64,000 nt of DNA from Heterodontus francisci (lineage: Eukaryota): NCBI RefSeq assembly GCF_036365525.1, contig NC_090395.1:65807326-65871325 (forward strand). The letters run 5' to 3'. The position numbers and the translations under genes are program-made. This document shows positions 253-59,910 of the stretch, in pieces (the first letter of the stretch is position 1; each line of letters begins with the position of its first letter). The notes below the pieces were generated by a model. That model ran no database searches. It had not been told where the DNA came from and worked only from the letters and a program-made list of their open reading frames with translations.

Positions 253-254
253 AA

Positions 255-3115: not shown

Positions 3116-3438
3116 AATCGTATCTGTTCCTGTACTTGGATTTTTATCACCACCAAATGTCACATATTCTGGGGGCTCAGTGTCCGTCTCCTGTGAGTCT
3201 GTCCGGGGATCCCTTCCCATTCGGTACACATGGCATGAAAAGACCCCGTCTGAAGATTCAAAGATCTCTGACACCAATAAACTGGATCTACATTGTCAAT
3301 CCTTCAAACAGCAACATCATCAATATTACTGCACAGCCTCGAATAATCAGGGGAGAAAATCCAGTGAAATTGTTCATGTGTCAGTCTTCAACAGATCGGG
3401 ATTGAATTGCAGTTATGTGACGCAAATCAGCAGCATTG
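3116..3438 (+). pseudogene. Gene A: duplicated C2-type Ig exon with a 1-nt deletion (frameshifted pseudo-exon or assembly error)
   Basis: Acceptor tttcccacag|3116 and donor 3438|gtaagt. Length is 323 nt versus 324 nt for the paralog at 38325 (AATCGTA vs AATCCGTG). Ig frame: SVPVLGFLSPPNVTYSGGSVSVSCESVRGSLPIRYTW...QYYCTASN. Phase-1 entry reads ESYLFLYLDF... to a TGA at 3403-3405. Confidence 0.8.
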
Positions 3439-3544
3439 GTAAGTGTTAGTGTAAGCAAACAATATGCTGAATGAATTAGTTTTAATTAATGTGTATTCAA
3501 ACTAGTTAAGTTCCTTTAGTCACTCCGAGAAACTGCAAAATAAA

Positions 3545-3825
3545 ATTGCATTTCTATAGCACCTTTCACAAGCTCAGGGTGTCCCAAAGTGCTTTACAGC
3601 CAATGAAAAGTGTAGACACTGTACTGTCTGAAACAGCAGCCAGTTTCTGCACAGCAAGCTCCCACAAACAGGAATGTAATAATAACCGGATAATCTGGTT
3701 TTTAGTGATTGCTGGTTGACAGAGAAATATTGGCCAGCAGGCTGGGGAGAACTCCCTTGCTCTTCTGTTAAATAGTGTCATATGAAATTTACAACCACCT
3801 GAGAGGGCAGACAGGATCTTCATTT
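3545..3825 (-). mobile_element. Deu-SINE (SacSINE1/AmnSINE1-like) 3' part
   Basis: Reverse complement matches the central and tail regions of the full-length copy at 63035-63505. Confidence 0.7.
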
Positions 3826-3849
3826 AGAGTCATAGGCTGAAGTTTATGG

Positions 3850-6155: not shown

Positions 6156-6158
6156 TTT

Positions 6159-6465
6159 GGCTGGAATTTTACGTGGCAGCGAAGACCCCACCGTCGGGGG
6201 AGAGCCCGCCTCCGCCAGGCCTGGAAGCCACACAACACTTTTACTTGGCCCAGACCCTGAATTGACCTCAGGTGGGATTTCCGTCCTTCTGAGGCAGGAT
6301 GTCCCACATCCAAGAGCTGCCAGCCAATCAGCACGCCTGCAGCTCTTCAGTCCCAGCTGCGCCGCTGGGAGCGAATTTAAATGCAGGACCTCCACCTTTG
6401 CGGCATTTCTGGGTTTCCCAGTCACACATGCACTTCCTCCCTGCCTTTCTATAAATTTCAAGGCC
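6159..6465. mobile_element. GC-rich Harbinger-type MITE / composite remnant
   Basis: Starts GGCTGGAATTTTAC and ends AAATTTCAAGGCC; contains GAGCTGCCAGCCAATCAG, shared with MITEs at 41814, 54971, 51290 and 62400. Confidence 0.55.
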
Positions 6466-6927
6466 AAAAGGCTTCTTTTCAGCTGAAGTTGCCTGGAACA
6501 AATCACAATTACACTCCCTATTTAAAACTACAATACATGAAACAGATAAGTGCCAATTCTTTGCCCTCATTTCCTGCTGGGATTTTCCAGGACTCTCTCC
6601 AACTCGTTCATGTTCAACAGTCAAACAATTAAACAACATTGGAGACTGGCTACATGCTACTAAGAGATGTTGTTAGCCTTGATTTCCATGTTGACACATC
6701 CTCAGTATCATTGCTACTGTCCTGATCTGCAGCCCTGCTATGTTCTGATACAATGGCAGACATGGTAGTTGAGGCTGCTCGGAGGATGGAGAGATATGGA
6801 GATGTAGATCTGCTGGTGAGATTCCAACATGGCAGGTCCTGGCCGAGATACAGAAGTGCTGACAATTGCAAAGTATTTGATTTTTAGATGTTCAGTCAAT
6901 ATCTGAATGTTTGTTTCTTTCCCACAG

Positions 6928-7245
6928 AATCTGTTCCTGTGCTTGTATTTTTATCACCACCAAATGTCTCCTGTTCTGGGGGTTCAGTGTCCGTCTCCTG
7001 TGAGTCTGTCCAGGGATCCCTTCCCATTCAGTACACATGGTATGAAAAGACCCCGTCTGAAGATTCAAAGATCTCTGACACCAATAAACTGGATCTACAT
7101 TGTCAATCCTTCACACAGAAACATCATCAATATTACTGCACAGCCTCAGATAATCAGGGAGAAAAATCCAGTGAAATGGTTAATGTGTCAGTCTTCAACA
7201 TATCGAGGACGAGCTGCAGTTATGTGACAATAATCAGGGGCATTG
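6928..7245 (+). CDS. Gene A exon: intact C2-type Ig domain (phase 1-1, 318 nt)
   Basis: tttcccacag|AATCTGTT...GGCATTG|gtaagt; encodes ESVPVLVFLSPPNVSCSGGSVSVSCESVQGSLPIQYTWYEK...LDLHC...QYYCTASDNQGEKSSEMVNVSVFN with the B-strand Cys, C-strand Trp and F-strand YYC. Confidence 0.9.
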
Positions 7246-8229
7246 GTAAGTGCTAGTTTAAACAAACAATGTGGTAAATGCACTTTTATAATTAATGTCT
7301 ATCCAAACTGGTCACTGGTTAAATTCGTCACTGAGAAAATGCAACAGGCCAAATTCACTCTATTTGGTTCCCTCAATAGTTAGAACAAGGCTATTTTTCA
7401 TGGAAAATATATCCCCCAAAACATGTGCAAAAATTACAGAAACTCCATTATTCCCATGAAATTAAAATGAAACTTGTTTGACTTTATAAACCGATATGCC
7501 TATTTCGAGCAGGTGGAGTTGTCAAATGCAACATCCAACTATTGTGCCCCAGTTTAGGAAAGATGTCAAGTGATAAGAGTGTGGAGGAGTAGAACTAAAA
7601 TAAAACCTGGGATGAGAGGTTTTAGTTATGAGGAGAGAAACATCAGAACAGAGGTTAAGTGAACTGCTGGATGTATTCAAAATTATTAGGGGCTTTGATG
7701 TGGTAAATTGGAACTAATTATTTCCACCAGCCAGTAGTGAGTCAGCAACTAGGCGGCATAAATTTGAGATCATCACCAAAAGGACAAAGGGGGAAGATAG
7801 GAAAATTTTATTGATGCAAATAGTTGTTAGGACATGGAAAGGCGGGCACGAATAAATGTCAGAAGCAAAATCAATAATAGCTTTGAAATGGGAAGCGAAA
7901 AGAAACACATTTAGCAGGGTATGGGGGAAAGGATAAGGCAATGGGATTAAGTGCGGAGCTCTTTCCAAGAGCCAGCACAAGATCATATTAAACACGCATC
8001 TGCTAATATTGGCAATGGTCATTTTCTGCATTATGGGGTCAGTTTTCTAAGCTTGCAGGAGCGATGGAAACCTCACCCTAGCGGCAGTGGATATTGCAAA
8101 ATCCCGTCAGCGATTTTCCACCCATTTAATTATAATGATCCATGTTGCTGTTGGGAAAGGATCCCTACCTCCAGCGAGCACTCAGATAACGAGCTCAGGT
8201 GTATTTTAATATATAACTAGCTTTAAAAT

Positions 8230-8790: not shown

Positions 8791-9591
8791 CTGACACCTA
8801 CTGTAGTTTCTGTAGTTTCCAGGTGAAATTGCTTCCTACTGCTAATATTCTTCACTGACAGATAAAGCAAGTGGCCATATTGACATATGGCCAGAGTCAA
8901 TATTTGCATATGTAAATTTTCATGCACCACTGCTCAGGAGAAAATGCATTTCTCTCTGTTTTCTGACTGTTTTGATGTTTCTCAGTCCAACCAATTGTGA
9001 ACATGTTGCTTCTCACTCAGTGGAAAATTAAACTGCTGTATTAAAATAAGCTAAATTCCTCCTTAATTCAGAACCAATGTCATTGTTTTATGGTGATTGA
9101 GTAATTCAGTTTTTAGTAAATGGAATTCTGAGATTTTGACTGGCAATTTGGAATCATATAATGTTACAGCACAGAAGGAGGATATAATTCAGGATGATAC
9201 CACTGTCCAGCACTGAGATAGTGCTTGGCTGTTGGAGGTGCTGTTGTCTAGATGAGATGTTAAACTAAGGATCCACATGCTCCCTCACATAGATACAGTC
9301 ATAGAGTCATTTACAGTCAAGAAGGAGGCCATTTGGCCCAATGAGTCCATGCCACTTCTCCATGGAACAATCCAGTCAGTCCCACTTCCCTGTTTGACCC
9401 CTGCAGCCCTACAAGTTCATTTCCTTCAAGTGTACATCCAATTTCCTTTTGAAAGTATTGATTGTCACTGCTTCCACCACCCTCGTGGCGGGGAGTTCCC
9501 GGTCACTACCACGGCATAAAAAAGTTCTTCCTCACATTTTTCCTTTATCTCTTGCCCGAAACCTTCAATCTTTGTCCTCTAGTTCTTCTGC

Positions 9592-10752
9592 TATCACTCG
9601 ACATCAAGGCAGTATTTGACCGAGTATGGCATCAAGGAGCCCGAGCAAAACTGAGGTCAATGGGATTCAGCGGGAAAACCCTCCGCTAGCTGGAGTCATA
9701 CCTAGCACAAAGGAAGATGGTTGTGGTTGTTGGAGGTCAATCATCTGAGCTCCAGGACATCACTGCAGGAGTTCCTCAGAGTAGTTTCCTAAGCCCAACC
9801 ATCTTCAGCTGCTTCATCAATGACCTTCCCTCAATCATAAGGTCAGAAGTGGGGATGTTCGCTGATGATTGCACAATGTTCAGCACCATTCGTGACTCCT
9901 CAAATACTGAAGCAGTCCGTGTAGAAATGCAGCAAGACCTGGACAATATCCAGACTTGGGCTGATGAGTGGCAAGTAACATTCGTGCCACACAAGTGCCA
10001 GGCAATGACCATCTCCGACAAGAGAGAATCTAACCATCTCCCCTTGACATTCAATGGCATTACCATCGCTGAATTCCCCACTATCAACATCCTAGGGGCT
10101 ACCATTGACCAGAAACTGAACTGGAGTAGCCATATAAATACCGTGGCTACAAGAACAGGTCAGAGGCTAGGAATCCTGAGGCAAGTAACTCACCTCCTGT
10201 CTCCCCAATGCCTGTCCACCATCTACAAGGCACAAGTCAGGAGTGTGATGGAATACTCTCCACTTGCCTGGATGGATGCAGCTCCAACAACACTCAAGAA
10301 GCTCAACACTATCCAGGACAAAGCAGCCCACTTGATTGGCTCCCAATCTACAAACATTCACTCCCTTCACCACCGATGTACAGTGGCAGCAGTGTGTACC
10401 ATCTACAAGATGCACTGCAGCAATGCACCAAGGCTCCTTAGACAGCACCTTCCAAACCCGCAACCTCTACCAACTAGAAGGACAAGGGCAGCAAATGCAT
10501 GGGAACACCACCACCTGCAAGTTCCCCTCCAAGTCACACATCATCCTGACTTGGAACTATATCGCCGTTCCTTCACTGTCACTGGGTCAAAATCCTGGAA
10601 CTCCCTTCCTAACAGCACTGTGGGTGTACCTACCCCAAATGGACTGCAGCGGTTCAAGAAGGCAGTTCATCACCACCTTCTCAAGGGCAATTAGGGATGG
10701 GCAATAAATGCTGGCCTGGCCAACAACGCCCAAATCCCATGAATGAATAAGA
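9592..10752 (+). mobile_element. 5'-truncated LINE (CR1-group family B), RT plus 3' tail, inserted into a CR1 fragment
   Basis: ORF 9717-10694 (325 aa) has AGVPQ..LSPTIFSCFINDLP and MFADD, preceded by LDIKAVFDRVWH; tail CAATAAATGCTGGCC...CCCATGAATGAATAA is shared with 21480-21550 and 50440-50530. Confidence 0.9.
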
Positions 10753-10754
10753 AA

Positions 10755-11690
10755 AACTTAATGGGAACAGATTTTCCTTGTCTAACTTATCTAAGCTTGT
10801 CATAATCTTGTACATCTCTATCAAAACTCCCCTCAATCTCATTTGCTCCAAGAAGAACATGCCCAGTGTCTCCAACCTAACCTTGTAACCAAAATCCCTC
10901 ATCCCTGGAACTATTCCGGTAAATCTTCTCTGCAGTCTCTCAAGGACCCTCACATCCTTCCTAAAGTGTGGTGACCAGAACTGGATGCAATACTCTAGTT
11001 GGGGCCTAACCAGAGCTTAACTTCCCTATGCCTCTATTTATGAAGCCCAAGATCCCATATGCTTTTCTAACCATTCTCTCAATATGTCCTGCCACCTTCA
11101 AAGATTAATACACGTGCACCCAAAGGTTCTTCAGTTCCTTCACACTCTTTAGTACTGCGCCATTAAGTGTATCTCACCTCACCTTTCCCTTCTGCCAACA
11201 TGCATCACCTTACACTTGTCTGTATTAAATTCTATCTACCACTTGTCTGCCCATTCTGATAGCCTATCTATGTCCTGTTGCATGCAGTCCATATCATCCT
11301 CACTGTTTGCCACTCCTCTGTGTTTTGAATCATTGGCACATTTTGAAATTGTACTCTGTATTCCAAGATCCAAGTCATTTATATATAGCAAAAAAGGAAT
11401 GGTCTTAGAACATTACTGTCTATCATCCTCCAGTCTGAAAAACAACCATTTACCACGAAAACTTGCTATTTTCTGTCGTTAAGCCAATTTTTTTATCCAA
11501 TTGCAATTGATCCTCTTATTCCATGAGCCTCAATTTTGTTAACCAGCCTTTTATGTGGTACTTTATCAAATGCTTTTTTAAAATCCATATAGACAATATC
11601 CACCTCATTCCCTTCATCAACCTTCTCTGTTACTTCATCAAAAAAATTCAATTAGATTAATCAAGCATGATCTGCCTTTTAGAAATCTAA
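10755..11690 (-). mobile_element. CR1 LINE fragment (continues at about 9295-9590)
   Basis: Minus-strand RVLERLQRRFTGIVPGMRDFGYKVRLETLG...RLRGVLIEMYKIM; homologous to 3850-4740. Confidence 0.8.
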
Positions 11691-13052
11691 TGTAAAAGAT
11701 CCCATGGTATTGTTCAAAGAAGAATAGAGAAGTTCTTCTGGTGCCCTAGCAAGCATTCACCCCTCAACCAATGTCACTAAAATACAGATTAACTGACAAT
11801 TTATCTCATTACTGTTGGTGGATGTTTGCTGCATGCAGATTACCTTCTGTGTTTCCCTGCATTATAACAGTGAATATACTTCAGATTGTTATTCTTCATC
11901 TCCATAGTGACGATCTGTTTGGTTTATCTGTTACCTTGTGTACAGAAAACCTCCATAGTAACTCTCTCTTAAACAAACAGCCTGTTTAGATTTATGCACC
12001 CATTGGATTAAGGGAATTCGGCTGTGAGGCACTTTGGAATATCCTGAGGTCATGAAAGGTGTTGGGTCAATAATACTGCAAGATCAGAAAATCAGCCCCA
12101 AGAGCTGGAAATGACCATTGACAATTTTAGCAGTTGACTGTTTAATATGATCATGTGATAGTAATAATATTATGTTAACAGCCAAATGCCGTACAAATTT
12201 TCACTGCTTGTCCAGTATTATTCAACAACAGTGATTATTAACCGAAATTTCCCAAACACTTAATCCTCAGCTGACATTGCTTTTCCACTGCGGATAGCTC
12301 TCCAGGACAAAATCGTGGTTTCCAGGCCCCCAGAAATACAGTTCCAGTGCTGGTAGGGGGCCGCTCTCTGCCTGGAACTTTCTTTATGTTTGTATGGAGG
12401 AAAAAAGTGATATCTGGATTTTAGTTCATCAACCTGAGCCTTTTAACTGCCCCTATAGTAACTTTGTATTACCAACATTCAGATATGTGGATGAAACAGA
12501 ATTAATCAGGAAAAATGGGTCATTGGCAGGTGTCAGCAGAATCTCTCCTTGATACCAGAGAGGGGGAAATTACATAAAACTTAAACCATCCAAATCCATT
12601 ATACTAACCAAAGTTCCATTTGAGAAGAGTGCTGAATTGCTTGACTGCACGGGAGAGAAACAGGTGAATAGAGTCATAGAGTCATACAGCACAGAAACAG
12701 GCCCTTCGGCCCATCATATCCATGCCAGACATCAAGCACCTATCTATTCTAATCCCATTTTCCAGCACTTGGCCCGTAGCCTTGGCGTTTCAAGTGCTCA
12801 TCTAAATACTTCTTAAATGTAGTGAGGGTTCCTGCCTCTACCACCCCTTCAGGCAGTGTGTTCCAGATTCCAACCACCTTTGGGTGAAATTTCTTTTCCT
12901 CAAATCCCCTCTAAACCTTCTGCCCCTTACCTTAAATCTACGCCCCCTGGTTATTGACCCCACCGCGAAGGGAAAAAGTTTCTTCCTATCTAACCTATCT
13001 GTGCCCCTCACAATTTTGTATGAATCTAAATGTTGTCCCCTTGTCTCAATAG

Positions 13053-13125
13053 GACCTGAACATTATTGTGAAGATTTTTCACCAACTTCAACCACATCTT
13101 CAGGATCTCCATCTGTCAGTAAAAG
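13053..13125 (+). CDS. Gene A exon: Ser/Thr/Pro-rich stalk (phase 1-2, 73 nt)
   Basis: ttgtctcaatag|GACCTGAA...AAAAG|gtaaaa; GPEHYCEDFSPTSTTSSGSPSVSK; paralogous to 41176-41296, and its phases fit both neighbouring exons. Confidence 0.85.
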
Positions 13126-13999
13126 GTAAAATATTCTCATTTATGGTGCTTTCATGAGCATTGAATTCAAATGAGAATAAATGATTAAGAGTTTTGGCAT
13201 AAGGATTTATAATCATTTGCTATTTTAGACTATAATTTATCAGAATGGAAATGGTGGCTGGCTTTACGTCATGCTGTTGTGTTAGGTTCCTAACGAAGTT
13301 ATGTTGGTGCAAAGTAAGAATAAGAAGTAAGCATCTCCAGTTTGCCACCCCTCAGATGGTGCTACTTTCATTATTCACCTTGATTGCTTCACTGCTAACC
13401 TAATCTCATGGACTTGTGCTTGCTGCTCTCCAGCGATGTCAGTTTTCCTTAACCTTCTCCCTTCTGAAGTGGCACTGACAGAAAAGTCGCATTCTCTGTC
13501 ATTTTCTTCTTCACAGTTCTCCAGTGGTGTATACATTCTTCCCAAACATAGAGGGAAGGAAGTCTGTCTGCTTCCAGTTCTCAACAATTGCCTGTTAGAA
13601 GGTGCGTAAGAACATTGTGGGATGATGCTATTCTGAGTACCCTCACTGCCTGCGGAGACATCTCATCAATGCTGCATCACACCAGACAGTGCTGCTTCCC
13701 TCAGATGGTCAGTCACTTTTATAAAGTCCCCAATTATAAAATTGAGCCTAACATTACAGCTATGCATTTTGGACATGTTAACGAACTTTGCTTAATTTGA
13801 TCTTTATCTAATTATCACAAAGTTGTCTTTCCTCCATGAGTCAAACACTAGGTTAGTTTCCCAGCTAAAGTCCCTTGGCTCTGCTGCTTCACATTAGTAC
13901 ACTATACTAAGATTACAGTGTAAACAAGAGATAAATGTTTTAAATACAAAGCAGTCTCATTTCTTCTGAATGGTTTTGTATTTCTTCTCTTTTGTTCAG

Positions 14000-14090
14000 T
14001 TACATTATCTGGAATGCGATACGCTGGGTACTCTTTGCTGTCCTGGTGACTTGTACTTTTACAGTAACAAGGTGCATGAGAAAACGCAAG
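14000..14090 (+). CDS. Gene A exon: transmembrane segment with charged Arg (activating type)
   Basis: cttttgttcag|T TAC ATT ATC TGG AAT GCG ATA CGC... reads (S)YIIWNAIRWVLFAVLVTCTFTVTRCMRKRK|gtgggg; phase-2 entry matches the stalk exon; hydrophobic run followed by basic stop-transfer residues. Confidence 0.85.
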
Positions 14091-14281: not shown

Positions 14282-14415
14282 CCTTTCATCAGGTCACAGA
14301 CCTGAAACATTAACTCTGTTTCTCTCTCCACAGATGCTGCCAGACCTGCTGAGTATATCCAGCACTTTCTGTTTTTATTTCAGGTTTCCAGCATCTGCAG
14401 TATTTTCCTTTTATT
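14282..14415. mobile_element. Penelope-like terminal-repeat fragment
   Basis: AGGTCACAGACCTGAAACATTAACTCTG...GATGCTGCCAGACCTGCTGAG; same family as 30715 and 32555 but in the opposite orientation. Confidence 0.6.
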
Positions 14416-14434
14416 TCAGGAAATAAATATTAGT

Positions 14435-14915
14435 CTTGGAAAGGGTGCAGTGTAAATTCACCAGGATGATACCTGGGCTTAAAGGGTTAAATTATAAGGA
14501 CAGATTGTATAAACTGGATTGTATTTCCTTGAGCTTGGAAGATTTGAGTTGTGAGTTGATTGAGCTATTAAAAATTATTAAGAAATTCAATATGGTAGGA
14601 ACAGAGAAACAGTTTGCTCAGTGGGGGAATCTGGTATAAGGGGGGCATAATCTAAAAATGAAAGCTAAGCCATTGAGGAGTGAAATTAGGATGCACTTTT
14701 ACACACAAAGGGTAGTGGAAATCTGGAAAATGCTCATCCTAAGATTGTGGGTGCTGGTTCAAGTGAAGGTTTCATAGCTGATATCACTATAAATTTGTCA
14801 GGTAAGAATAGCAAAGGATATAGATCAATGGCAGGTATACCGAGTTGAACTACAGATCAACCATGATCTAATTGAGTGGTGCAGTCAAATAGGCTACTCC
14901 TCTTGTGATATTCCT
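14435..14915 (+). mobile_element. CR1 LINE 3' fragment
   Basis: LERVQCKFTRMIPGLKGLNYKDRL...; CR1-type 3' end. Confidence 0.75.
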
Positions 14916-15469: not shown

Positions 15470-15517
15470 TCACTCGCTGAATCAGATGGTCACAGTTTGA
15501 TCAAGGTGGTAAAATGA
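15470..15517 (+). CDS. Gene A probable terminal exon: short Tyr-free cytoplasmic tail
   Basis: ttttctttttcag|TCA CTC GCT...AAA TGA reads SLAESDGHSLIKVVK* in phase 0, matching the TM exon donor; AATAAA at 15614-15619. Alternative: read-through of the weak donor gives VGIMDFI* ending at 14114. Confidence 0.6.
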   Translation, partial: SLAESDGHSLIKVVK

Positions 15518-17966
15518 AGATTGCCTGGTTACATCTACGTTGATGGAATTTTGAATCCTGATTAAATATTCATTATTCATCCAGCTTTGAACATTTTCTT
15601 TCCAACTATACGAAATAAAATGGATTTTCTCATTAAATTAGTGGAGGAAGAATCAAAAACCAAAACGATGGCTGCGACTTTCAAGTCTCTCTGTCTACAC
15701 CTTGGTAATAATATACATCTGTGTGCCCACTTCCTGTCTACATAACTAGGCTTCTTGTTTTATATTTTTGTCATAATTTTTGTGTCAATTGTTAAGCCTG
15801 AAAATATCACAACTACATGAACAATGTTCTGTAAGAAATAGGCAACTTGAATTATTCATTCGCTGGAAACCAATAATATGTTGCATCTTTCCATGGGATT
15901 GAACTCTAGTGAAGATATTGCAAAAAGTATAACTGCAGTTTCAAGAATGAAGCCTGATCCCCTGTTTGACCACCATCTTACTGGACCCCTCCACTGCCTC
16001 TGTGCTGTCACAGCACTTGGATGAGCCAAAATATCTACCAATTCAACATTGTGAAGACTGAAGCCCCCCCGAATCTCGTGGCGGGGGTGGGCTTTCCGTC
16101 CCCCGCAATGGCGTCAGCTGCCTGTGCGCAGGCACTGCCGCCATTTTTAAAGGGCAGCCAGCCTTGCCGCCCAATTTAAATTTTTTAAGTCCTACCCCCA
16201 AAATTAAATTAATACATTTCTAACACCCCTTTCCCACCCTCTAATAACAATTACAATAAATTATTTCCCCTTCCCCCCACAAAACACTTACCTTTTATAT
16301 CTGACCTTCCCCGCCCCCCCACCCCAAACTGCATAAAGTTTAAGGTTTAACCCTTCCCACCATCCCCTACACCCATTACGTATATTTGACTATGTTCACA
16401 CGCCAAAATTCTTTCAGCAAATTCTGGGCGGTTATGTTTTCAGCAATAGTACACAAAATAAATCCTGTCAGGATGATTCACTATCAAGCACAGCCTGCTC
16501 GGTCACACCTTCCAAGATGTCAACAACCATATCTGCAGACCCCACCTGGCAGCAATTGTCTACAGGTCATCAAAGAGGCAGATGTAGAGCTGTGCCCTCT
16601 GTTGCACGGACACCGAGAGCTAATAAGCAGCATAAATCTGGAAAAGGCAGTGATGATAATGGTCAGCTGTAACCTCCATTCTGAAGATACATGAAGAGTG
16701 GAATTGTCTGAGAGGCCCTGCCACCATCCATTAATGTGAATAAATAGGATATTGTGGGTAACGCAGCCGGCGACATTCGCCATCCCACTGATGGTTTGGG
16801 GCAACTGCCCGTTAAGGACAAGTCCTGGGAAGGCTTTTTACGAGAAGGGCAGAAATCCCAGAGTCAGGCTAATCTACATATTGCGAGCAGATCACTGTAT
16901 CAATCCAGAGCAAATGGGATGTATATCCTACTGGGGGAGGAATTTTGCGGCAGGACCTTGTCCTGCAATTGTTCATCTCAGTGGAATGGATATTTAAAAT
17001 CTGCCGACAGCACGTCTACCAGGATATGGTTTTAAGACAATCCTATGTCACTGTACAATCTCAGACTATTTGGTCAGATATTCCTTCATGTTGTTATTAA
17101 ACTCTGTATTAACTGCTTCAGCTGTGAATCTAAATTGCATACTCAGTACTTTGTGGGAAGGAGAGGACATTGAATCGTCCTGTCAATCTCAACAATTGCA
17201 TGAGGTTTATTTTTAAATTTGTGTTCTAGCTCAGGTGTTTTCAACCAGGGGCCTGCAAAAAGATTTCAAGGCAGTTAAGACTTGCACAACCTAAAGTTGG
17301 TGATTAATATCAGTGATCAGACCCAGAATGTGCTGCCACCCAGTGGCTCCCAAAGAAACTGCGGCTGTAATGATCTCACACAGTTTCAGTCTCCGGTTTA
17401 TTCACTTTAACAGAGTCCCCGAGTGTTCCTCACCCTGAACCACACAGGGGTCCTCGGACAATTCCCCTTCAGTTGGCGACCTATATGATTGAGCCTGATG
17501 AACAAGGAGAAGCAGATTAAACTGACGCTCAGATTCATCCATTTATATTGTCTTGCTTGATGTCGCACTTGATACTTTTGGCCTTGACTACAAGATGACC
17601 GACACAGAGCATTGGGAATTACAGTCAGGGGGTGATGACAATCTCTTCCACACAACTGTTCAATCTCCCGAATATAACGAAAAACAGAACAAGGGCCTGC
17701 AACTCAGTGGCCCCATAGAATCAACAGTAAACACAATATGATGCTCACCATAGCTCCACACAAAGGAAGGGAACATGTTGATGGAGAGTAAAGCAAGAAT
17801 TCAAACTTCTCAGATTGCTCTCGAAACTGTAATGATTAAAGAGACCAAAAGACTCGTTTAGAGCCAGACACTGCAGTACCAGAGCAGAATAGGAGAGGGA
17901 CAACTGAGAGATCAATTATCTCAGTAAATCAGGGTCAAGAAACAAATACAGGGTCCAAAAAATATA

Positions 17967-21384: not shown

Positions 21385-21600
21385 CAAAATCCTGGAACTC
21401 CCTTCCCAACAGCACTGTGGGTATACCTACCCCAAATGGACTGCAGCGGTTCAAGAAGGCGGCTCACCACCACCTTTTCAAGGGCAATTAGAGATGGACA
21501 ATAAATGCTGGCCTGGCCAGTGCCACCCACATCCCATGAATGATTAAAAAAAAAGATAAGGATTCCAAACGTTATCCCTGACATAGAGACTCGAATGACC

Positions 21601-22930
21601 TTCTTCTTTGGCCTCCTTGACTCGGGAGACAATGGGTAAGCGCCTGGAGGTGGTCAGTGGTTTGTGGAGCAGCGCCTGGAGTGGCTATAAAGGCCAATTC
21701 TGGAGTGACAGGCTCTTCCACAGGTGCTGCAGAAAAATTTGTTTGTCGGGGCTGTTACACAGTTGGCTCTCCCCTTGCGCTTTTGTCTTTTTTCCTGCCA
21801 ACTGCTAAGTCTCTTCGACTCGCCACACTTTAGCCCCGCTTTAATGAGTTCACGCCAGCTCTGGCGAACGCTGGCAACTGACTCCCACGACTTGTGATCA
21901 ATGTCACAGGACTTCATGTCGCGTTTGCAGACGTCTTTGAAGCGGAGACATGGACGGCTGGTGGGTCTGATACCAGTGGCGAGCTCGCTGAACAATGTAT
22001 TTTTGTGGATCCTGCCATCTTCCATGCGGCTCACATGGCCAAGCCATCTCAAGCGCCGCTGGCTCAGTAGGGTGTATAAGCTGGGGATGTTGGCCGCCTC
22101 GAGGACTTCTGTGTTGGAGATACGGTCCTGCCACCTGATGCCAAATATTCTCCGGAAGCAGCGAAGATGGAATGAATTGAGACGCCGCTCTTGGCTGACA
22201 TACGTTGTCCAGGCCTCGCTGCCATAGAGCAAGGTACTGAGGACACAGGCTTGATACACTCGGACCTTTGTGTTCCGTGTCAGTGTGCCATTTTTCCACA
22301 CTCTCTTGGCCTGTCTGGACATAGCAGTGGAAGCCTTTCCCATGCGCTTGTTGATTTCTGTATCTAGAGACAGGTTACTGGTGATAGTTGAGCCTAGGTA
22401 GGTGAACTCTTGAACCACTTCCAGAGCGTAGTCGCCAATATTGATGGATGGAGCATTTCTGACGTCCTGCCCCATGATGTTTGATTTCTTGAGGCTGATG
22501 GTTAGGCCAAATTCATTGCAGGCAGCCGCAAACCTGTCGATGAGACTCTGCAGGCACTCTTCAGTTTGAGATGTTAAAGCAGCATCGTCAGCAAAGAGGA
22601 GTTCCCTGATGAGGACTTTCCGTACTTTGGACTTCACTCTTAGATGGGCAAGGTTGAACAACCTGCCACCAGATCTTGTGTGGAGGAAAACTCCTTCTTC
22701 AGAAGACTTGAACGCATGTGAAAGCAGCAGGGAGAAGAAAATCCCAAAAAGTGTGGGTGCGAGAACACAGCCCTGTTTCACGCCACTCAGGATAGGAAAG
22801 GGGTCTGATGAGGTGCCGCCATGTTGAATTGTGCCTTTCATATTGTCATGGAATGAGGTGATGATACTTAGTAGCTTTAGTGGACATCCAATCTTTTCTA
22901 GTAGACTGAAGAGACCACGTCTGCTGACCA
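21601..22930 (-). mobile_element. RTE-clade (BovB-like) LINE, 5'-truncated
   Basis: ORF 21654-22841 (395 aa) has GVKQGCVLAPTLF, LLFADD, FTYLGS, RRLRWLGHV and a C-terminal C2H2-like CSTCGRACHSRIGLYSH; AAG-rich tail. Confidence 0.93.
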
Positions 22931-28682: not shown

Positions 28683-28722
28683 ATGATGTGGATTCCGATT
28701 CTTCTCATTTGTTCCCTGCCCG
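28683..28722 (+). CDS. Gene B exon 1: signal peptide
   Basis: ATG ATG TGG ATT CCG ATT CTT CTC ATT TGT TCC CTG CCC G|gtgagt reads MMWIPILLICSLP(V); a phase-1 donor joins VSGA of exon 2 to complete a leader. Confidence 0.85.
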
Positions 28723-38324: not shown

Positions 38325-38648
38325 AATCCGTGTCTGTTCCTGACCTTAGATTTTTATCACCACCAAATGTCTCATGTTCCGGGGGTTCAGTGTCCGTCTC
38401 CTGCAAGTCTGTCCAGGGATCCCTTCCCATTCAGTACACATGGTATGAAAAGATCCCGTCTGAAGATTCAAAGATCTCTGACTCCAGTAAACTTGATCTA
38501 CATTGTCAATCCTTCACTCAGCAACATCATCAATATTACTGCACAGCCTCGAATAATCAGGGAGAAAAATCCAGTGAAATGGTTAATGTGTCAGACATCA
38601 ACAGATCGGGGGAGAGCTGCAGTTATGTGATACAAATCGACAGCATTG
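38325..38648 (+). CDS. Gene B exon 3: C2-type Ig domain (phase 1-1, 324 nt)
   Basis: tttcccgcag|AATCCGTG...AGCATTG|gtaagt; ESVSVPDLRFLSPPNVSCSGGSVSVSCKSVQGSLPIQYTWYEK...QYYCTASNNQGEKSSE. Confidence 0.93.
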
Positions 38649-39794
38649 GTAAGTGTTGGTTTAAACAAACAATGTGGTAACTGATTTTTTAAAAAATAAT
38701 GTCTATCCAAACTTGTCACTGGTTAAATTCCTTCAATCACTCTAAGAAACTTCAACTGGGCAAATTCACTCTATTTGGTCCCTCTGCAGTTATGAACAAG
38801 GACACAGATCTGCATTTTTTTAAGGAAAATGGATGGGATCATAAAATACTGCCAAACCATACATAAATATTGCAGAAACTACAGTAATTCCATGAAATTA
38901 AAATGGAATTTGTTTGACTGAATCTTCATAAACCAATATGCCTGTTTCTAGCAGATGGAACTGTGAAATGCAACCTCCAACTGTTGCGTTCTGGTTTAGG
39001 AAGAATGTCAGGGATGGAGTGTTGAAGAGTTGAACTAAAATGAAACCTGAGGTGAGATTTTAGTTATGAGGTGAGAAACATCAGAACAGATGTTAAGTGA
39101 TATGCTGGAGATATTAAAAAGTATTAGAGGCTTTGATCAGGTAAATTCGGATTAATTCCTTCCACTCGTCAGTGAGGGAGCAACTGAAGGGCATAAATTT
39201 AACATCATCACCAAAAGGACCAGGGAAGAAGTTAATGGAATTCTATTGATGTAAATGGTTGCCAGGACATGGAATGCTGGCTCAAATAAGTGTCAGAAAC
39301 AGAATCAATAATGGCTTTTAAAAGGGAAGGGAAAAGAAGCAAATTTAGGAGGATGTGGGGACAGTACAAGACAATGGGACTAAGTGGGGAGTTCTTTCAG
39401 AGAGTCAGCACAAGAGTGAATTTCCTCCTTCTCTGCTGTAAAATTCTATCATTCCAAATTGTCAGACAAAATCTTAGAACTCCATCTACTAAAAAGTGAT
39501 TTACTCAGTCACCATAAAACAACGATCCTTTTCTGAATTAAGAAGGATCTTGGCCTATTTGAATCTAGTGGTTTAATTTTCTGCAAAGTGGAAACAGCAT
39601 GTTCACCATTGGTTGCGCTGAGAAACATCAAAATGGTCAGCAAACAGAAATGGAGTTTCTCCTGAGCGATAGTACATATAAATTACATACACAAATACTG
39701 ACACTGGCCATGTGCTAATGTGGTTACTTTCTTGAGATGTCAGAGAAGAAGACTGTCAATTGCAGGTAGAAATTGTAAACTGCATTTGAAATGT

Positions 39795-40250: not shown

Positions 40251-41175
40251 TTACCCTTTGCAACAAATTATTTATTAAAACGTACCTGAGCTAATTATCT
40301 GAGCACTCACTGGAGGTGGGGTGCCTCGCCCACCAGCAATGCAGATCATTATAAGTAATGGACAGAAAATCACTGGCAGGATATCACAATATCCACTGCT
40401 GGTGGGTGAGGTTTCCAGTCACTACAGCAAACTCAGAAAACTGACCCCAAGAGACAGGAAATGACCAGATTAATATTAGCAGGTGACTGTTTAGTATGAT
40501 CATGTGATGTTCATCCGTCTATTATTTTAACAGAAACATTCTTTCAACAGAGAAATGTCATACAAATATTAACTGCTTGGCCACTAATATCTGCAGCAGT
40601 AATTCCTGGTCTGATATTTCCTGATGACATTCTTTTTCCACATCACTCCAGGGCAGAATCGTGTGCTGGGTCCCCAATAATACATTTTCTGGTGTTGGCA
40701 GGGGCCAGCTCTTTGCCTGGAGCTTTCATTTGCGTTTGCACAGGGCAAAAAAGGGGATATCTGGATTGTGGTCTCACCAACCCGAGCCCTTTAATTGCCC
40801 CAATAGTAACTCTGATAGTAACTGTCAGGTATGGGAAAGAAATAGAAATTATCAGTAAAAACAAGTCATTGCCAGGTGTCAGCAGCCTCTCTCCTTGCGA
40901 TCAGAGAGAGGGGAAATTACACAGAAATAAACCATCCAAATTCATTATATTAACCAGGCTTTTCCTCAAGTAATGAAGTTCCATTTGACAATGTTTCCTG
41001 CATTACAACAGTGACTACACTTCAAAAAGTACTTCATTGTCTGCAAAGTGTTTTGAGACGTCCGATGGTTGGGAAAGGCACTATCTAAATGCAAGTCTTT
41101 CTTTCAATGGTGCTCTCTTGGTTGACTACATGTGAAAATAAGATGAATCTGAATGTTATTCCCTTGTTTCAATAG

Positions 41176-41296
41176 GACTGGAATATTTTTGTGAAGTTTC
41201 TTCAACTGTATCACCAACAACTACACATTCTACAAGCACAAATATAATTTCCACTGATTATCGGAACCAATCATCAAAATTAAAACCTGATAAAAG
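41176..41296 (+). CDS. Gene B exon 4: Ser/Thr-rich stalk (phase 1-2, 121 nt)
   Basis: ttgtttcaatag|GACTGGAA...GATAAAAG|gtacaa; GLEYFCEVSSTVSPTTTHSTSTNIISTDYRNQSSKLKPDK. Confidence 0.88.
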
Positions 41297-41813
41297 GTAC
41301 AATGTTCTCATTGCTTGTGTTTTGATTGGCACACCTTCCATGTGGGGGATTAACAATGTTCTTTAACAATTTTGGCATAAGGAGTGAAAATCATTTATTA
41401 TTTTGCAATGTAGCTCATCAGAATGGAAATGGTGGCTGGGTTTACATTATGCTGTTGTGTTAGCTTCTTAACAAAGGTGCTATTTTGGTTGGTGGCAGAT
41501 AAGAACAAGAAGTGAGCACCTCCACTTTGCCACTCATCAGATGGTTACTATTCACCATGATTATTTCACCCCAATCCTAATCTTGTGGTGGGAGATGGGT
41601 TGTAACTGTCAAACTTACCTTATCAATATTCGAAGGTGAGCAGTGCAGTTCTCCCTGGAGGCTTGGCCAATATTTATCCCTTAACTAACACCACTAAATA
41701 AAGCAGATTATCTTGTCATTATCACTTCTTTATTTCTGGGACCTTGCTGTGTGTAAATTAGCACCCATGTTTCCTACATTACAAAAGTAACTACATTTCA
41801 AAATTGCTTCATT

Positions 41814-42617: not shown

Positions 42618-42706
42618 CCTGCTTTACATTGTGCTTGGTGTGCTGGCGGTCTTTCTTGTTGTGTTCGCTGTTTCTCTACTTTTGTACCTGAGGCAATTCA
42701 AAAAAG
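42618..42706 (+). CDS. Gene B exon 5: uncharged transmembrane segment (phase 2-1, 89 nt)
   Basis: ctctgtcacag|C CTG CTT TAC...AAA AAA G|gtgagt reads (S)LLYIVLGVLAVFLVVFAVSLLLYLRQFKK(G). Confidence 0.92.
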
Positions 42707-47626: not shown

Positions 47627-48081
47627 AGCCGCATGGAAGATGGCAGGATCCCCAAAGACACATTGTACAGCGAGCTCGCCACTGGTATCAGACCCACCGG
47701 CCGTCCATGTCTCCGTTATAAAGACGTCTGCAAACGCGACATGAAATCGTGTGACATTGATCACAAGTCGTGGGAGTCAGTTGCCAGCATTCGCCAGAGC
47801 TGGCGGGCAGCCATAAAGACAGGGCTAAATTGTGGCGAGTCGAAGAGACTTAGTAGTTGGCAGGAAAAAAGACAGAGGCGCAAGGGGAGAGCCAACTGTG
47901 CAACAGCCCCAACAAACAAATTTCTCTGCAGCACCTGTGGAAGAGCCTGTCACTCCAGAATTGGCCTTTATAGCCACTCCAGGCGCTGCTTCACAAACCA
48001 CTGACCACCTCCAGGCGCGTATCCATTGTCTCTCGAGATAAGGAGGCCCAAAAGAAAAAGAAAGAAAAAAGAAAAAAAGAA
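47627..48081 (+). mobile_element. RTE 3' fragment inserted in the Harbinger element
   Basis: ORF 47633-48004 MEDGRIPKDTLYSEL...CSTCGRACHSRIGLYSH; A/G-rich tail. Confidence 0.9.
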
Positions 48082-49196
48082 GTGATTAATTAAAAGGTCT
48101 TTTGTGCAATTCATTGGCAATCATTGTCTGAATGGCATTTTCCATTATGCCTTAAGTGTGAGCTACTAACCTCCCCCTTTCCCCTTCGTGCAATGCCAAT
48201 GTGACCAGATGGGCACTGGCACACAATGCAGCTGGTCGCAATCAAGCATCACAAATGAAAAGGAGGTGACAGACTACATACTTTATTGGATTCTCTGTGA
48301 GTGGACATCAGGGAGGCTGGAAGCAGGTGATTACGAGCTTGTTTCTTGCCTCCTTGGCACATTGCTCAATCTGTCTGGCCTTCAGTGCAAGGTCTTCACC
48401 ATCCATTGCTGCTTGCCCCTCTCCCTCCTCTGCATCCTCCTCGTTGGTGGAGGAGTGTCACTCAGGCATCTCATCGTATTTCAAGGCCTCCCCCCTCTGC
48501 AGTACTAGATTGTGCAGAGCACAGCTGACCACAACGATACATGAGACCCTCGCTGGGGCATACTGCAGGGCTCCACTGGATCAAACGAGGCAGCAGAATC
48601 TCATTGTCAGCAACTCAATGGCTTGCTCGATGGTTGCTCAGGTGGGGCTGTGGCAAGTGTTGTATCTCTCCTCTACTGCATTGCAAGGGTTTCATACAGG
48701 CGTAAGAAGCCAAGTCTTCAATGGGTAGCCCTTGTCCCCGAGAATTCATCTTGAAGGCGAGCAGGGGGATTGAAAATCTGTGCCACCGGGGATTGTCAAA
48801 GTATGTAGGCATCATGGCTGCTTCCCGGGAAGTGGACACACACATGCAGGAAATGCTTTTGGTGGTCACAGACCAGTTGACCAATGATTGAATGGAAGCT
48901 CTTCCTGATGAAGGTGGCTGGCTGGTCCATCGGAGGCGCCGCATCATGCCAAGGGGTCCAAATATTCAGCATTTATGAGACCAATGCCAGGTGACCTGTG
49001 GGCCTGCAGATCACTGTCCATGCAGAGATGGCCTCGCCTTGACAACTGAGCTTTTGGTAATTCTCACAGCGAAGTCCCTGATGGCCCTCAGAGCCCAACC
49101 TTGCTGATGGCTGACCCTCTCTTTCAGCTATATGAGGGACCAAACATATCACACAGCAGTTTGGTAACACAATACAGCCCTCCCAAATGCACACTA

Positions 49197-49500
49197 ACCC
49201 TTGAGGAACCCTTGAGACTCCGAACACCCTTGCAGAGACCTTGACATGCCAAACCCCATTGCAGAGCCCCGAAACTCCAAACCCCTTTGCAGAGTTCCCG
49301 AGAATCCGAACCCCCTTGCAGAGCCCCCAAAACCCCGAAACCCCTTGCAGAGCCCCCAAAATTCCAAACCCGCTTGCAGAGCCTCCAAGACCCTGAAACC
49401 CCTTGCAGAGTTTCGGAGACCTCAAAACCCCTAGCAGAGCCCCCGAGACCCCGAAACCCCTTGTAACAACCCTGAGACCCCAAAAACCCTTGCAGAGCAC
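49197..49500. repeat. Minisatellite, about 11 copies of a 29-bp unit
   Basis: CCCTTGCAGAG core recurs at about 49227, 49256, 49284, 49313, 49342, 49371, 49400, 49429, 49458 and 49487. Confidence 0.85.
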
Positions 49501-49717
49501 ACAGCAACACAGTCTGACAAGGGCCTCCAAACCTGCACCCCTCCCCCAACCTTCCTCTATGCAGCAATGCTCAGGGCTGCCTCCCCGTCATTGCAACAAA
49601 GCCTCTCACTTCAGTGCCACCAGGTTTTAACAGTCAGGAACTCGAAGGCACGTGAGTGCCGCCCACCATTCACTAAATCAAGGGCCAATCATTAAATCTG
49701 GAATAATTAGATTTAAA

Positions 49718-54965: not shown

Positions 54966-54970
54966 GCTAT

Positions 54971-55808: not shown

Positions 55809-57062
55809 CAAGTTCCATGACAATATGAAAGGCACAATTCAGCATAGCGGTGCCTCATCAGACCCCTTTCCTATCCTGAGTGGCGTGAAACAGGGTTGTG
55901 TTCTCGCACCTACACTGTTTGGGATCTTCTTCTCCCTGTTGCTCTCACATGCGTTCAAGTCTTCAGAAGAAGGAATTTTCCTCCACACAAAATCAGATGG
56001 CAGGTTGTTCAACCTTGCCCATCTTAGAGCGAAAACCAAAGTACGAAAAGTGCTCATCAGGGAACTCCTCTTTGCTGACAATGCTGCATTAGTATCCCAT
56101 ACAGAAGAGTGTTTGCAGAGACTCATCGACAGGATTGCGACTGCCTGCAACAAATTTGGCCTAACCATCAGCCTCAAGAAAACGAACATCATGGGACAGG
56201 ATGTCAGAAATGCTCCATCCATCAATATCGGTGACCACGCTCTGGAAGTGGTTCAAGAGTTCACCTACCTAGACTCAACTATCACCAGTAACCTGTCTCT
56301 CGATGCAGAAATCAACAAGCGCATGGGAAAGGCATCCGCTGCTATGTCCAGGCTGGCCAACAGGGTGTGGGAAAATGGCGCACTGACACGGAACACAAAG
56401 GTCCGAGTGTATCAAGCCTGTGTCCTCAGTACCTTGCTCTATGGCAGCAATGCCAAGACAACGTATGTCAGCCAAGAGCAACGTCTCAACTCATTCCATC
56501 TTCGCTGTCTCCGGAGAATCCTTGGCATCAGGTGGCAGGACCGTATCTCCAACACAGAAGTCCTCGAGGTAACCAACATCCCCAGCATATACACCCTACT
56601 GAGCCAGCGGCGCTTGAGATGGCTTGACCATGTGAGCCGCGTGGAAGATGGCAGGATCCCCAAGGACGCATTGTACAGCGAGCTCGTCACTAGCATCAGA
56701 CCCACCGTCCATCCATGTCTCCGCTTTAAAGACGTCTGCAAATGCGATGTGAAGTCCTGTGACATTGAACACAAGTCATAGGAGTCAGTTGCCAGTGATC
56801 GTCAGAGCTGCCGGACAGCCATAAAGGCGGGGCTAAAGAGTGGTGAGTCGAAGAGACTTAGCTGTTGGCAGGAAAAAAGACGGAAGTGCAAGGAGAGAGC
56901 CAACTGTGTAACAGCCCCAACAACCAATTTTATCTGCAGCACCTGTGGAAGAGTCTGTCAGTCTAGAATTGGCCTTTATAGCCACTCCAGCGCTGCTCCA
57001 CAAACCACTGAGCACTTTAGGTGCTTACCCATTGTCTCTCAAAACAAGGAGGCCAAAGAAAG
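55809..57062 (+). mobile_element. RTE LINE, 5'-truncated, with a premature stop
   Basis: ORF 55804-56781 (GVKQGCVLAP, LLFADN); degenerate TSD ATGTAGGGAA..TATGA at 55786 and 57063. Confidence 0.92.
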
Positions 57063-57218: not shown

Positions 57219-57271
57219 GTACAAACTACATTATACGTCATCGAAAAGGAAAGACTGTAAATGAGAATCAG
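57219..57271 (+). CDS. Gene B exon 6: membrane-proximal cytoplasmic segment (phase 1-0, 53 nt)
   Basis: taatttttcag|GT ACA AAC...AAT CAG|gtaagg reads (G)TNYIIRHRKGKTVNENQ; its phases bridge the TM exon and the ITIM exon exactly. Confidence 0.8.
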
Positions 57272-57799
57272 GTAAGGACATCCAGTATGAATTCTCTAAC
57301 TATTGTATGGAAATTGGCAAAACTGGATGACATAGATTTACATCAAATTTACAGCACAGAAATAGGCCATTCAGCCCAACTGGTTACGCTAGTGTTAATG
57401 CTTCACATGAGCCTCCTCCTACCCCTCTTCATCTAACTCTGTTAATGTATCCTTCTATTCCTTTCTCCCTTGTATGCTTAACTCCCTTTCCCTGAAATGC
57501 AAGTATGCTATTTAACTCAACCAATCCTTAAGAAAGGAATAAGGAATTCAGGAGCAACCTCTTTACCTCCAGAGTGCTCAGAATGTAGAACTCTACCAGA
57601 GGGTGAATATGATAAATCCATTCAAGGGGAAGCTGGATAAGCACATGAGGGAGTAAGAAGTAGAAGGATATGCTGGTGAGGTTAGATGAAGAGGGGTGAG
57701 AAGAGGTTGGTGAAGAGAATAACACCGGCACGGACCCATTGGGCTGAACTGCCTGTTTTTGTGCTGTAAATATATATTTTAATATATTCCCTCCATCAT

Positions 57800-59410
57800 A
57801 GGGTCAGAAGTGGGGATGTTCGCTAATGATTGCACAGTGTTCAGTACCATTTGCAACTACTCAGATAGTGACGCAGTCCGTGTCCACATTCAGCAAGACC
57901 TGGATCATTTTGTGGCAGAGTTGCTACTTTTATCTCTAACAATTGCGTAGTTTTAGTTCTTTTTCCAGATCTTTTTCCAGATATGTATTTCAACATTGGG
58001 CTGATAAGTGACAAGGAACATTCGTGCCACAAAAGTGCCAAGCAATGACCAACAAGAGAAAATCTAACCATCTTCCCTTGGCATTCTTCTTCTTCTTCTT
58101 CTTTGGGCCTCCATATCTCGGCAAAGTGGCGCAGTGGTTAGCACCGCAGCCTCACAGCTCCAGGGACCCGGGTTCGATTCCGGGTACTGCCTGTGTGGAG
58201 TTTGCAAGTTCTCCCTGTGTCTGCGTGGGTTTTCTCCGGGTGCTCCGGTTTCCTCCCACAAGCCAAAAGACTTGCAGGTTGATAGGTAAATTGGCCATTA
58301 TAAATTGTCACTAGTATAGGTAGGTGGTAGGGAAATATAGGAATAGGTGGGGATGTTTGGTAGGAATAGGTGGGGATGTTTGGTAGGAATATGGGATCGG
58401 TGTAGGATTAGTATAAATGGGTGGTTGATGTTCGGCACAGACTCGGAGGGCCGAAGGGCCTGTTTCAGTGCTGTATCTCTAATCTAATCTAATCTCGAGA
58501 GACAATGGATATGCGCCTGGAGGTGGTCAGTGGTTTGTGAAGCAGCGCCTGGAGTGGCTATAAAGGCCAATTCCGGAGTGACAGGCTCTTCCACAGGTGC
58601 TGCAGCCAGTGAGGTGCAATGACCTCTCCCACCGACAAAGGCAACCCGTGGCGCCCAGTTTCTACGCCAATTTATCTGGACTTATAACCCGTAACTGCTG
58701 CCTTCCGTGTTGTTTTAGTCGCTGTGAGGCAAATTACCATTGCTAAATCCCCACTATCAACATCCTGGGAGTTACCATTGACCAGAAACTTATAAATATA
58801 AATGCTGTGGCTACAACAGCAGGTCAGAGGTTGGGAATTCTGTGGTGAGTGACCCAACTCCTGACGCCCCAAAGTTTTCCCACCATTTACAAGGCAGAAG
58901 TCAGGAGTGTGATGGAATACTCTCCACTTGCCTAGATGGGTGCAACTCCAACAATACTCATGAAGCTCAATACCATCCTGGACAAAGCAGCCCGCATGAT
59001 CAGCACCCCATCTACCACCTTAAACATTCAAACCCCCCACCACCACTTGCATACTGTGGCAGCAGTGTGTACCATCGACAAAATGCACGCCCCACGCCTC
59101 CTTCGACAGCATCTTCCAAACCCGTGATCTCTTCTACCTAGAAGGCCAAGGGCAGCAGATGCATGCGAACACCACCACCTGCAAGTTCCCCTCCAAGTCA
59201 CACACCATCCTGACTTGGAACTATATCACTGATCCTTTACTGTCACTGGGTCAAAAACCTGGAACTCCCTTCCTAATAGCACTGTGGGTGTACATACACT
59301 AGATGGACTGCAGCAGTTCAAGAACGCGGCTCATCACCACCTTCTCAAGTGCAATTATGGATGGACAACAAATGCTGGCCTTTCCAGCTACACTCCCAAC
59401 CCATGAAAGA
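57800..59410 (+). mobile_element. Family-B LINE 3' fragment containing an RTE fragment (58085-58605, -), which contains an HE1 SINE (58120-58495, +)
   Basis: The LINE is interrupted after ...CTTCCCTTGGCATTC; the RTE tail is split at ATCTCG with ATCTCG on both sides of the SINE. Confidence 0.85.
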
Positions 59411-59595
59411 ATTTTTTAAAAAACTTTGTAATTCTTTGTAAACTGATTTGCAATAATCAGGAATTCGATTTCTCTTCATAACAGCACAAATCACCATACA
59501 GGTTAATCAGAATAAAATTGGATCATACATTTTTTTATTTTAGTAATTTGCAAACAAGTTGATCAGAAAAAAATTGGATTTTTTTTTTATTTTAG

Positions 59596-59910
59596 CAATT
59601 GGCAACAGTAGAAGAGAGCGCTGTATATGCAAATATTAACCACATTCCAAGTGGCTCAGCAGAAACACATAGCGAGGGAGCTGCCAAGTTGAATAATGAA
59701 AACGGAATCACATATGCAGCATTGCAGTTTCAAAAGAAATCGTCAGCACGGAGCGGTGAGGTGGCAAAGTGTTCAGTTAACAACGAGGACAGTGTCATCT
59801 ACAGTGGTCTCAACATTCTAAGCCAGTCCCCAAAGAACAATCGAGAAACGCCATCAGTTGATACACCACAGGACACTCAAATGGCAATTTATGCTACCGT
59901 TACTCGTTAG
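59596..59910 (+). CDS. Gene B exon 7: cytoplasmic tail with ITIMs and stop codon
   Basis: tttttattttag|CAA TTG GCA...; AVYANI, ITYAAL, VIYSGL, AIYATV*. The seven exons sum to 1254 nt, one open frame of 417 aa. Confidence 0.92.
   Translation, partial: QLATVEESAVYANINHIPSGSAETHSEGAAKLNNENGITYAALQFQKKSSARSGEVAKCSVNNEDSVIYSGLNILSQSPKNNRETPSVDTPQDTQMAIYATVTR

Follow-up and report, generated by a model that had tools for sequence, protein, structure and literature searches.

In this study, we analysed a 64,000-nucleotide window of the horn shark genome (Heterodontus francisci, contig NC_090395.1, positions 65,807,326 to 65,871,325; coordinates below count from the first letter of this window) and describe in it two neighbouring immunoglobulin (Ig) receptor genes, here called Gene A and Gene B, which on sequence comparison are members of the modular domain immune-type receptor (MDIR) family. 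We consider it likely that they are two adjacent same-strand MDIR genes which arose by tandem duplication, Gene B being a complete gene of the inhibitory type and Gene A the 3' part of a gene of the activating type. Gene B has a neutral transmembrane (TM) helix and a tail with immunoreceptor tyrosine-based inhibitory motifs (ITIMs), whereas Gene A ends in a TM helix with an embedded arginine (Arg-TM) and a short tail without tyrosine, so that the contrast of activating and inhibitory designs proposed in an earlier, sequence-only reading of this DNA was recovered. The 3' signalling modules of the two genes are unrelated, and both are old and conserved in sharks as well as rays.

Exon borders from that earlier reading were read from the DNA and subsequently checked by script for splice sites and phases, with the exons handled one by one. 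All of the named exons were present on the plus strand, where they form two series in which every border carries an AG acceptor or a GT donor, and the phases are consistent apart from one frame-broken C2 exon of Gene A (Table 1). Gene B comprises seven exons at 28683-59910 on the plus strand, in consistent phase from the leader to the stop codon. Translated in frame, every one of its exons recurs without a mismatch in a RefSeq 'uncharacterized protein [Heterodontus francisci]' of 417 residues (P0177), which surfaced in a search with the orthologue from Heptranchias, and residues 1-417 are tiled at 100% except for five split codons. The previously proposed 417-residue model is therefore correct to the residue and already in RefSeq; the description of the genes as hidden among repeats is true for the open reading frame track, but not for RefSeq, where Gene B exists as an exact model. 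The TM exon of Gene B encodes a helix without any charged residue, as had been claimed, with a Kyte-Doolittle value of 3.18 for the best 19-residue window, compared to 1.8 for the TM exon of Gene A. Two of the four tyrosine motifs in its tail are canonical ITIMs, I-T-Y-A-A-L (Y353) and V-I-Y-S-G-L (Y382), and the other two are ITIM-like.

Five exons of Gene A lie inside the window, all on the plus strand. Its TM exon specifies a hydrophobic run of 23 residues in which the arginine is number eight or nine, and a basic stop-transfer sequence comes after the run. The tail consists of 7 residues from the end of this exon and 15 from the terminal exon, amounting to 22 residues without tyrosine and thus to the length and composition expected earlier. 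The terminal exon, with its coding part at 15470-15517, was located by looking 3' of the donor at 14090 for the tail peptide conserved among relatives, and a good acceptor was found there. Aligned over 30 of 30 positions, the TM exon is 57-63% identical to Arg-TM proteins of four sharks (Chiloscyllium punctatum, Hemiscyllium ocellatum, Scyliorhinus canicula and Heptranchias perlo), and over 26 positions it is 54% identical to an Arg-TM protein of Mustelus asterias. The 15-codon mini-exon matches the final 13-15 residues of five relatives (P0225, P0038, P0028, P0159 and P0154), and orthologues such as P0225 (305 residues; TM to 290, tail 291-305) agree with it in the residue at which the exon boundary lies. 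Reading through the donor at 14090 would yield a 7-residue ending with a stop at 14112, which was rejected as the main form since orthologues end in the mini-exon sequence. A junction from the same donor to the ITIM exon of Gene B at 59596 would be phase-compatible. No extra Ig, TM or ITIM exon was found at 15.6-28.6 kb or past 59.9 kb using all 260 fetched proteins.

Table 1. Exons of the two MDIR genes in the window, with splice phases and, for Gene B, the residues of the RefSeq protein P0177 that they encode.
Feature	Position	Strand	Phase	Characteristics	P0177 residues
Gene A C2 exon 1 (C2-1)	3116-3438	+	frame broken	323 nt; Pfam Ig_3 E 1.3e-6; probable pseudo-exon	
Gene A C2 exon 2 (C2-2)	6928-7245	+	1-1	318 nt; 84% amino acid identity to Gene B C2	
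Gene A stalk exon	13053-13125	+	1-2	opens G-P-E-H-Y-C-E, as the Gene B stalk exon does	
Gene A TM exon	14000-14090	+	2-0	embedded Arg in Y-I-I-W-N-A-I-R-W; basic stop-transfer R-C-M-R-K-R-K at end	
Gene A terminal exon	15470-15640	+	0-stop	15 codons + TGA (15470-15517); short 3' untranslated region, AATAAA at 15614-15619	
Gene B leader exon	28683-28722	+	0-1	begins at ATG	1-13 (100%)
Gene B V exon	31330-31641	+	1-1	CD300/pIgR-type V-set	15-117 (100%)
Gene B C2 exon	38325-38648	+	1-1	FCRL-like C2/I-type Ig domain	119-225
Gene B stalk exon	41176-41296	+	1-2	Ser/Thr-rich	227-265
Gene B TM exon	42618-42706	+	2-1	helix without charged residue	267-295
Gene B cytoplasmic exon 1 (cyt1)	57219-57271	+	1-0		297-313
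Gene B tail exon	59596-59910	+	0-stop	four Tyr motifs; stop 59908-59910	314-417

Membership in the MDIR family, which had been suggested before, was confirmed by full-length homology to the skate proteins. The V exon of Gene B matches the Pfam V-set family (E 3.7e-10), and against the PDB its best single-domain match is CLM-1/CD300f (E 7e-19), with all five pIgR domains (D1-D5) aligning as well; it also carries the extra C-C' cysteine pair (Y-W-C...C) found in CD300/pIgR V domains. For the C2 exons, the matches to Ig_3 and Ig_2 fall slightly short of the Pfam cut-offs, and FCRL5 is their best solved relative (best domain independent E-value 5.6e-6). With the C2 exon as the query, 668 relatives were returned by exhaustive HMMER searching, the top-scoring ones coming from sharks and rays. 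Clearnose skate proteins which UniRef names Modular domain immune-type receptor 2, 3 and 5 are full-length homologues. MDIR2 (P0215, 416 residues) aligns with the Heptranchias orthologue at 44% identity over 100% coverage (E 5e-101), and in a tblastn search of the window it gave 61% identity for the V domain (9e-38), 59-62% for C2 domains (down to 3e-33) and 32% for the tail (3e-9). Matches to CD300 and pIgR-like proteins of bony vertebrates cover 23-33% of the Heptranchias query, that is, the V part only, and among these search results the layout of V, C2 and tail is limited to cartilaginous fishes, chimaera included. Gene B has the MDIR ectodomain of a CD300/pIgR/TREM-like V and a C2/I-type domain together with the cytoplasmic ITIMs of inhibitory members; of the ectodomain of Gene A the C2 domains alone are visible, joined to the positively charged TM residue and short tail of activating members. 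MDIRs have been described as multigene families of activating and inhibitory receptors, likened to CD300, TREM, FCAR and pIgR (PMC3031540), and that article cites Cannon et al. 2006 for the clearnose skate MDIRs. RefSeq labels across the relatives vary between 'uncharacterized', 'pIgR-like', 'CMRF35-like', 'FCRL5', 'CXADR-like' and 'A33 antigen-like', and are thus unrelated names for one family.

Among the known systems, the skate MDIRs share the layout of CD300/pIgR-like V, C2, Ser/Thr-rich stalk and TM. Gene B agrees with MDIR2 in length and layout, and the tails of MDIR2 and MDIR3 are collinear with that of Gene B and carry the same ITIM tyrosines, while the protein named MDIR5 in UniRef has an Arg-TM with 14 of 29 positions identical to the TM exon of Gene A. 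In contrast, the horn shark belongs to a different order, and identity falls to about 60% for the Ig domains and to 32% for the tail. Mammalian CD300 (CMRF35-like) receptors share with these genes the V fold, including the extra cysteine pair, and a mixture of ITIM and charged-TM forms, but their ectodomain is a single V-type domain without C2, whereas Gene B has both. Similarity to pIgR extends to all five of its domains, and RefSeq calls many relatives 'polymeric immunoglobulin receptor-like'; however, pIgR has 4-5 tandem V-like domains and a transcytosis tail, without FCRL-like C2 and without ITIM or Arg-TM alternatives, while here one V domain is followed by an FCRL-like C2 domain and either an ITIM tail or a 22-residue tail. 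FCRL proteins, which include the best PDB relative of the C2 domain, also have ITIM tails, but their ectodomains lack a CD300-type V domain and identity is only about 30%. As to the paired-receptor class, in which similar ligand-binding ectodomains are joined to opposite signalling modules, the C2 domains of Gene A and Gene B are 84% identical and their signalling modules unrelated, the V domain of Gene A lying outside the window. The two genes are further examples of the described MDIR design and not a new kind of system. What is added is an exon-level map of neighbouring activating-type and inhibitory-type MDIR genes in a shark, which includes the 15-codon exon that separately ends the activating form, the broken C2-1 exon and the order of A followed by B.

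The two signalling modules could be followed across the cartilaginous fishes in 135 fetched chondrichthyan proteins which contain this C2 domain. Among these, 47 have an Arg-TM and 42 at least two ITIM-like motifs, and both features occur together in one only; the Arg-TM count was 45 fetched proteins with a first pattern and reached 47 of the 135 with a slightly wider one. The Arg-TM signature W-x-x-(G/I/L)-R-W-(L/V/G)-(L/F)-F is strongly conserved among the relatives, and in most shark Arg-TM proteins the final 15 or so residues of the tail read roughly x-L-N-E-S-D-x-H. When 19 inhibitory tails were aligned, with MDIR2, MDIR3 and a chimaera among them, Y353 was found in 19/19 and Y382 in 17/19, while the C-terminal Y412 occurs in every tail reaching that far and Y324 is kept in sharks and chimaera and missing from skates. 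A tree was calculated from the membrane-proximal C2 domains with a quick method over only 107 columns, so that its deep forks are left open. On this tree, proteins of the Arg-TM and ITIM types are intermingled (20 label changes each) and the C2 domains group by lineage, which is the pattern of paired-receptor families. Arg-TM and ITIM proteins stand as C2 sisters in Heptranchias, in Scyliorhinus and in a skate pair, with support of 96, 91 and 94, respectively, in the Shimodaira-Hasegawa-like approximate likelihood ratio test. Adjacent gene numbers of an Arg-TM and an ITIM protein were found for chiPu_0012807 (Arg-TM) and chiPu_0012808 (ITIM), for LOC127580795/LOC127580796 and for LOC144605584/586, which is suggestive of a conserved adjacency in other sharks, with gene numbering, not a map, as its source. 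We regard two cassettes, the TM exon plus 15-codon mini-exon of the Arg-TM form and the four-tyrosine ITIM tail, as ancient and separately conserved, both of them in sharks and rays and the ITIM tail out to chimaera, while the Ig domains track lineage. This supports the view that the paired-receptor design is older than the split between cartilaginous and bony vertebrates.

Longer members of the family (P0154, P0185, P0159 and P0001) have a V-C2-V-C2 layout of about 500-610 residues, and in one Mustelus model there are six C2 domains, two of them arranged as a C2-C2 tandem. A 'modular' build is thus a general trait of the family, and the tandem C2 exons of Gene A have precedents.

Duplication within the window is visible from self-comparison, in which a block of about 1-1.6 kb occurs in three copies, each around an Ig exon (2169-3538, 6377-7982 and 37381-39415), at 78-83% identity. 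On the stalk side, 12074-12610 is homologous to 40423-40956 and 13120-13406 to 41291-41583, and the stalk exons, described as paralogous in the sequence-only reading, indeed have homologous flanking introns and the same opening residues. Homology between the two genes thus spans the C2 exon, the stalk exon and roughly the first 290 bp of the intron that follows, where it ends. The three C2 exons of the window are mutually equidistant at 89% nucleotide and 82-84% amino acid identity, and the earlier description of them as near-identical was overstated.

From this architecture, a mechanism can be proposed by analogy. Ligand engagement of the Gene B protein would lead to phosphorylation of its tail tyrosines and recruitment of an SH2 phosphatase, by which activation would be damped, as in other ITIM receptors. 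The TM arginine of the Gene A protein would instead pair with an acidic TM residue of an adaptor bearing immunoreceptor tyrosine-based activation motifs (ITAMs), for example a homologue of FcR-gamma or DAP12. In Gene A the arginine is followed by 15-18 hydrophobic residues, a layout which resembles that of FcR-gamma-coupled receptors. Searches of the published literature on shark FcR-gamma/DAP12 and on CD300 in cartilaginous fish gave nothing useful. Since Ig binders occur among the closest mammalian relatives both of the V domain (namely pIgR, Fc alpha/mu receptor-like and CD300 proteins) and of the C2 domain (FCRL), the activating and inhibitory MDIR genes might conceivably be Fc or polymeric-Ig receptors of cartilaginous fishes, in which case they would determine the threshold at which complexes of IgM, IgW or IgNAR cause activation. 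We consider this highly improbable, and we know of no Fc or polymeric-Ig receptor of this kind established in sharks. The mini-tail of Gene A, D-G-H-S-L-I, additionally fits the [DE]xxxL[LI] sorting-motif pattern; rays have D-P-H-S/R-L-V at this place, and the Leu pair is absent from several sharks. A trafficking role for the acidic mini-tail (E-S-D-x-H) of Arg-TM forms would be pure conjecture.

Several results weigh against reading Gene A as an intact activating gene, and they would be accounted for if Gene A were a decaying remnant or pseudogene, a 3' fragment left by the duplication, with Gene B alone being functional. Relative to the C2 exon of Gene B, C2-1 has a frameshifting 1-nt deletion 3 nt past the acceptor, and one extra cysteine is missing from it (NVTY instead of NVSC); its Ig frame is open, but entry in phase 1 meets a stop at 3405. 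Neither a leader nor a V exon of Gene A was found at window positions 1-3115, and no H. francisci Gene A protein was among the matches of the protein searches. The ratio of nonsynonymous to synonymous substitution rates (dN/dS) is 0.8-0.94 for the three C2 exons, near 1, and exon identity is no higher than that of 200 bp of upstream intron. Ectodomain constraint since the duplication is therefore weak or mixed, and the values fit relaxed as well as diversifying evolution of C2, between which dN/dS cannot tell. Public runs were searched with a 7.5-kb LINE (long interspersed nuclear element)-containing stretch that did not reach the Gene A terminal exon at 15470; 24 runs were returned, holding 5-14% of its words, and four of them were mapped, three of unlabelled kind and one RNA-labelled. 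Their contigs were mostly transposon, with zero depth over unique intron. A contig of about 94 nt covers the TM exon of Gene A in each of three runs with one mismatch, G14040C (Val to Leu), and depth was zero in the intron bins on both sides and in the bin with the 3'-terminal 25 nt of the stalk exon. Three runs thus contain, without its introns, an exon that is almost the same as the Gene A TM exon, and the contig may be that of a paralogue; transcript support specific to Gene A was not obtained from the mapped runs. However, four exons in a row (C2-2, stalk, TM and terminal) remain open in frame, with canonical splice sites, phases that match and a poly(A) signal after the last of them, and the TM and tail exons are collinear with those of orthologues at 47-69% identity. 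C2-1 is probably a pseudo-exon that would have to be skipped, and without it Gene A would encode a V-C2 Arg-TM protein of about 294 residues, compared to 304-305 in other sharks and a skate. The window moreover starts just 3.1 kb 5' of C2-1, while the V exon of Gene B lies 6.7 kb 5' of its C2 exon, and the V exon of Gene A is therefore expected beyond the window start. On balance, we regard decay of Gene A as unlikely.

A much closer question is whether the two genes are matched to each other. The sequence-only reading had called them a cognate pair, which the present comparisons do not support: the C2 identity between Gene A and Gene B, 84%, is the same as that between the C2 domain of Gene B and a Mustelus Arg-TM protein, the equidistant C2 exons of the window find no resolution on the C2 tree, and the V exon of Gene A lies outside the window. 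They could equally be neighbours in a large birth-and-death cluster with different ligands and no matched partner, in line with the many relatives of V-C2-V-C2 or longer layout. Against this speak the recurrence of Arg-TM/ITIM neighbours in several species by gene numbering and the C2 sisters of the two types in Heptranchias, Scyliorhinus and a skate pair, and we give unmatched neighbours a chance only slightly below even. For the activating type itself, a further reading would place the arginine at the outer margin of the helix, with no ITAM adaptor recruited, the short-tailed form being a decoy or co-receptor or acting via its conserved acidic mini-tail. The hydrophobic stretch past the arginine is only 15-18 residues, many orthologues have an additional Lys or Asp three residues before it, and the mini-tail motif L-N/A-E-S-D-x-H is conserved, though without a known signalling role. 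Yet a run of this length is too short to span the membrane alone, so that the arginine must be inside the helix, and an arginine followed by about 16-18 hydrophobic residues is the layout of FcR-gamma-coupled mammalian receptors; we regard this reading as very unlikely. The reading of a complete inhibitory-type Gene B next to the 3' part of an activating-type Gene A is the one we prefer.

Two splice-site observations concern Gene B. In the stretch 31321-31341, the acceptor of its V exon is doubled in tandem (cag|TTTCAG|), with sites at 31330 and 31336 that are both in phase 1; the RefSeq horn shark model takes 31330. The isoforms X1 and X2 of Heptranchias perlo differ by exactly two residues (V-S), which is what a 6-nt acceptor shift would drop, and the alternative acceptor therefore seems conserved. 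At the ITIM exon, the acceptor region (59502-59608) has a second copy about 52 bp upstream (ttttattttag, 59533-59543); a hypothetical tail exon from 59544 would open on TAA in phase 0, and the resulting tail would lack ITIMs; RefSeq takes 59596.

The DNA of the window is rich in LINE fragments. In the mapped runs, transposon parts of the Gene A introns (9300-11700, 12500-13050 and 14290-14500) reached contig depths of thousands to hundreds of thousands, and these element families are abundant in the four samples, probably as transcripts. A stretch of 235 bp is 100% identical and inverted between 29085-29319 in intron 1 of Gene B and 47822-48056 in its long intron 5, with further copies of 87-94% identity at 21600-21836 and 56830-57060; it represents the 3' end of a young LINE/RTE-type element. 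The same 14.5-kb intron 5 contains a degenerate tandem repeat at 48970-49570 (49198-49382 against 49313-49498, 74% identity), which harbours long, repetitive Gly/Leu/Val-rich open reading frames on the minus strand and resembles a minisatellite, not a gene.

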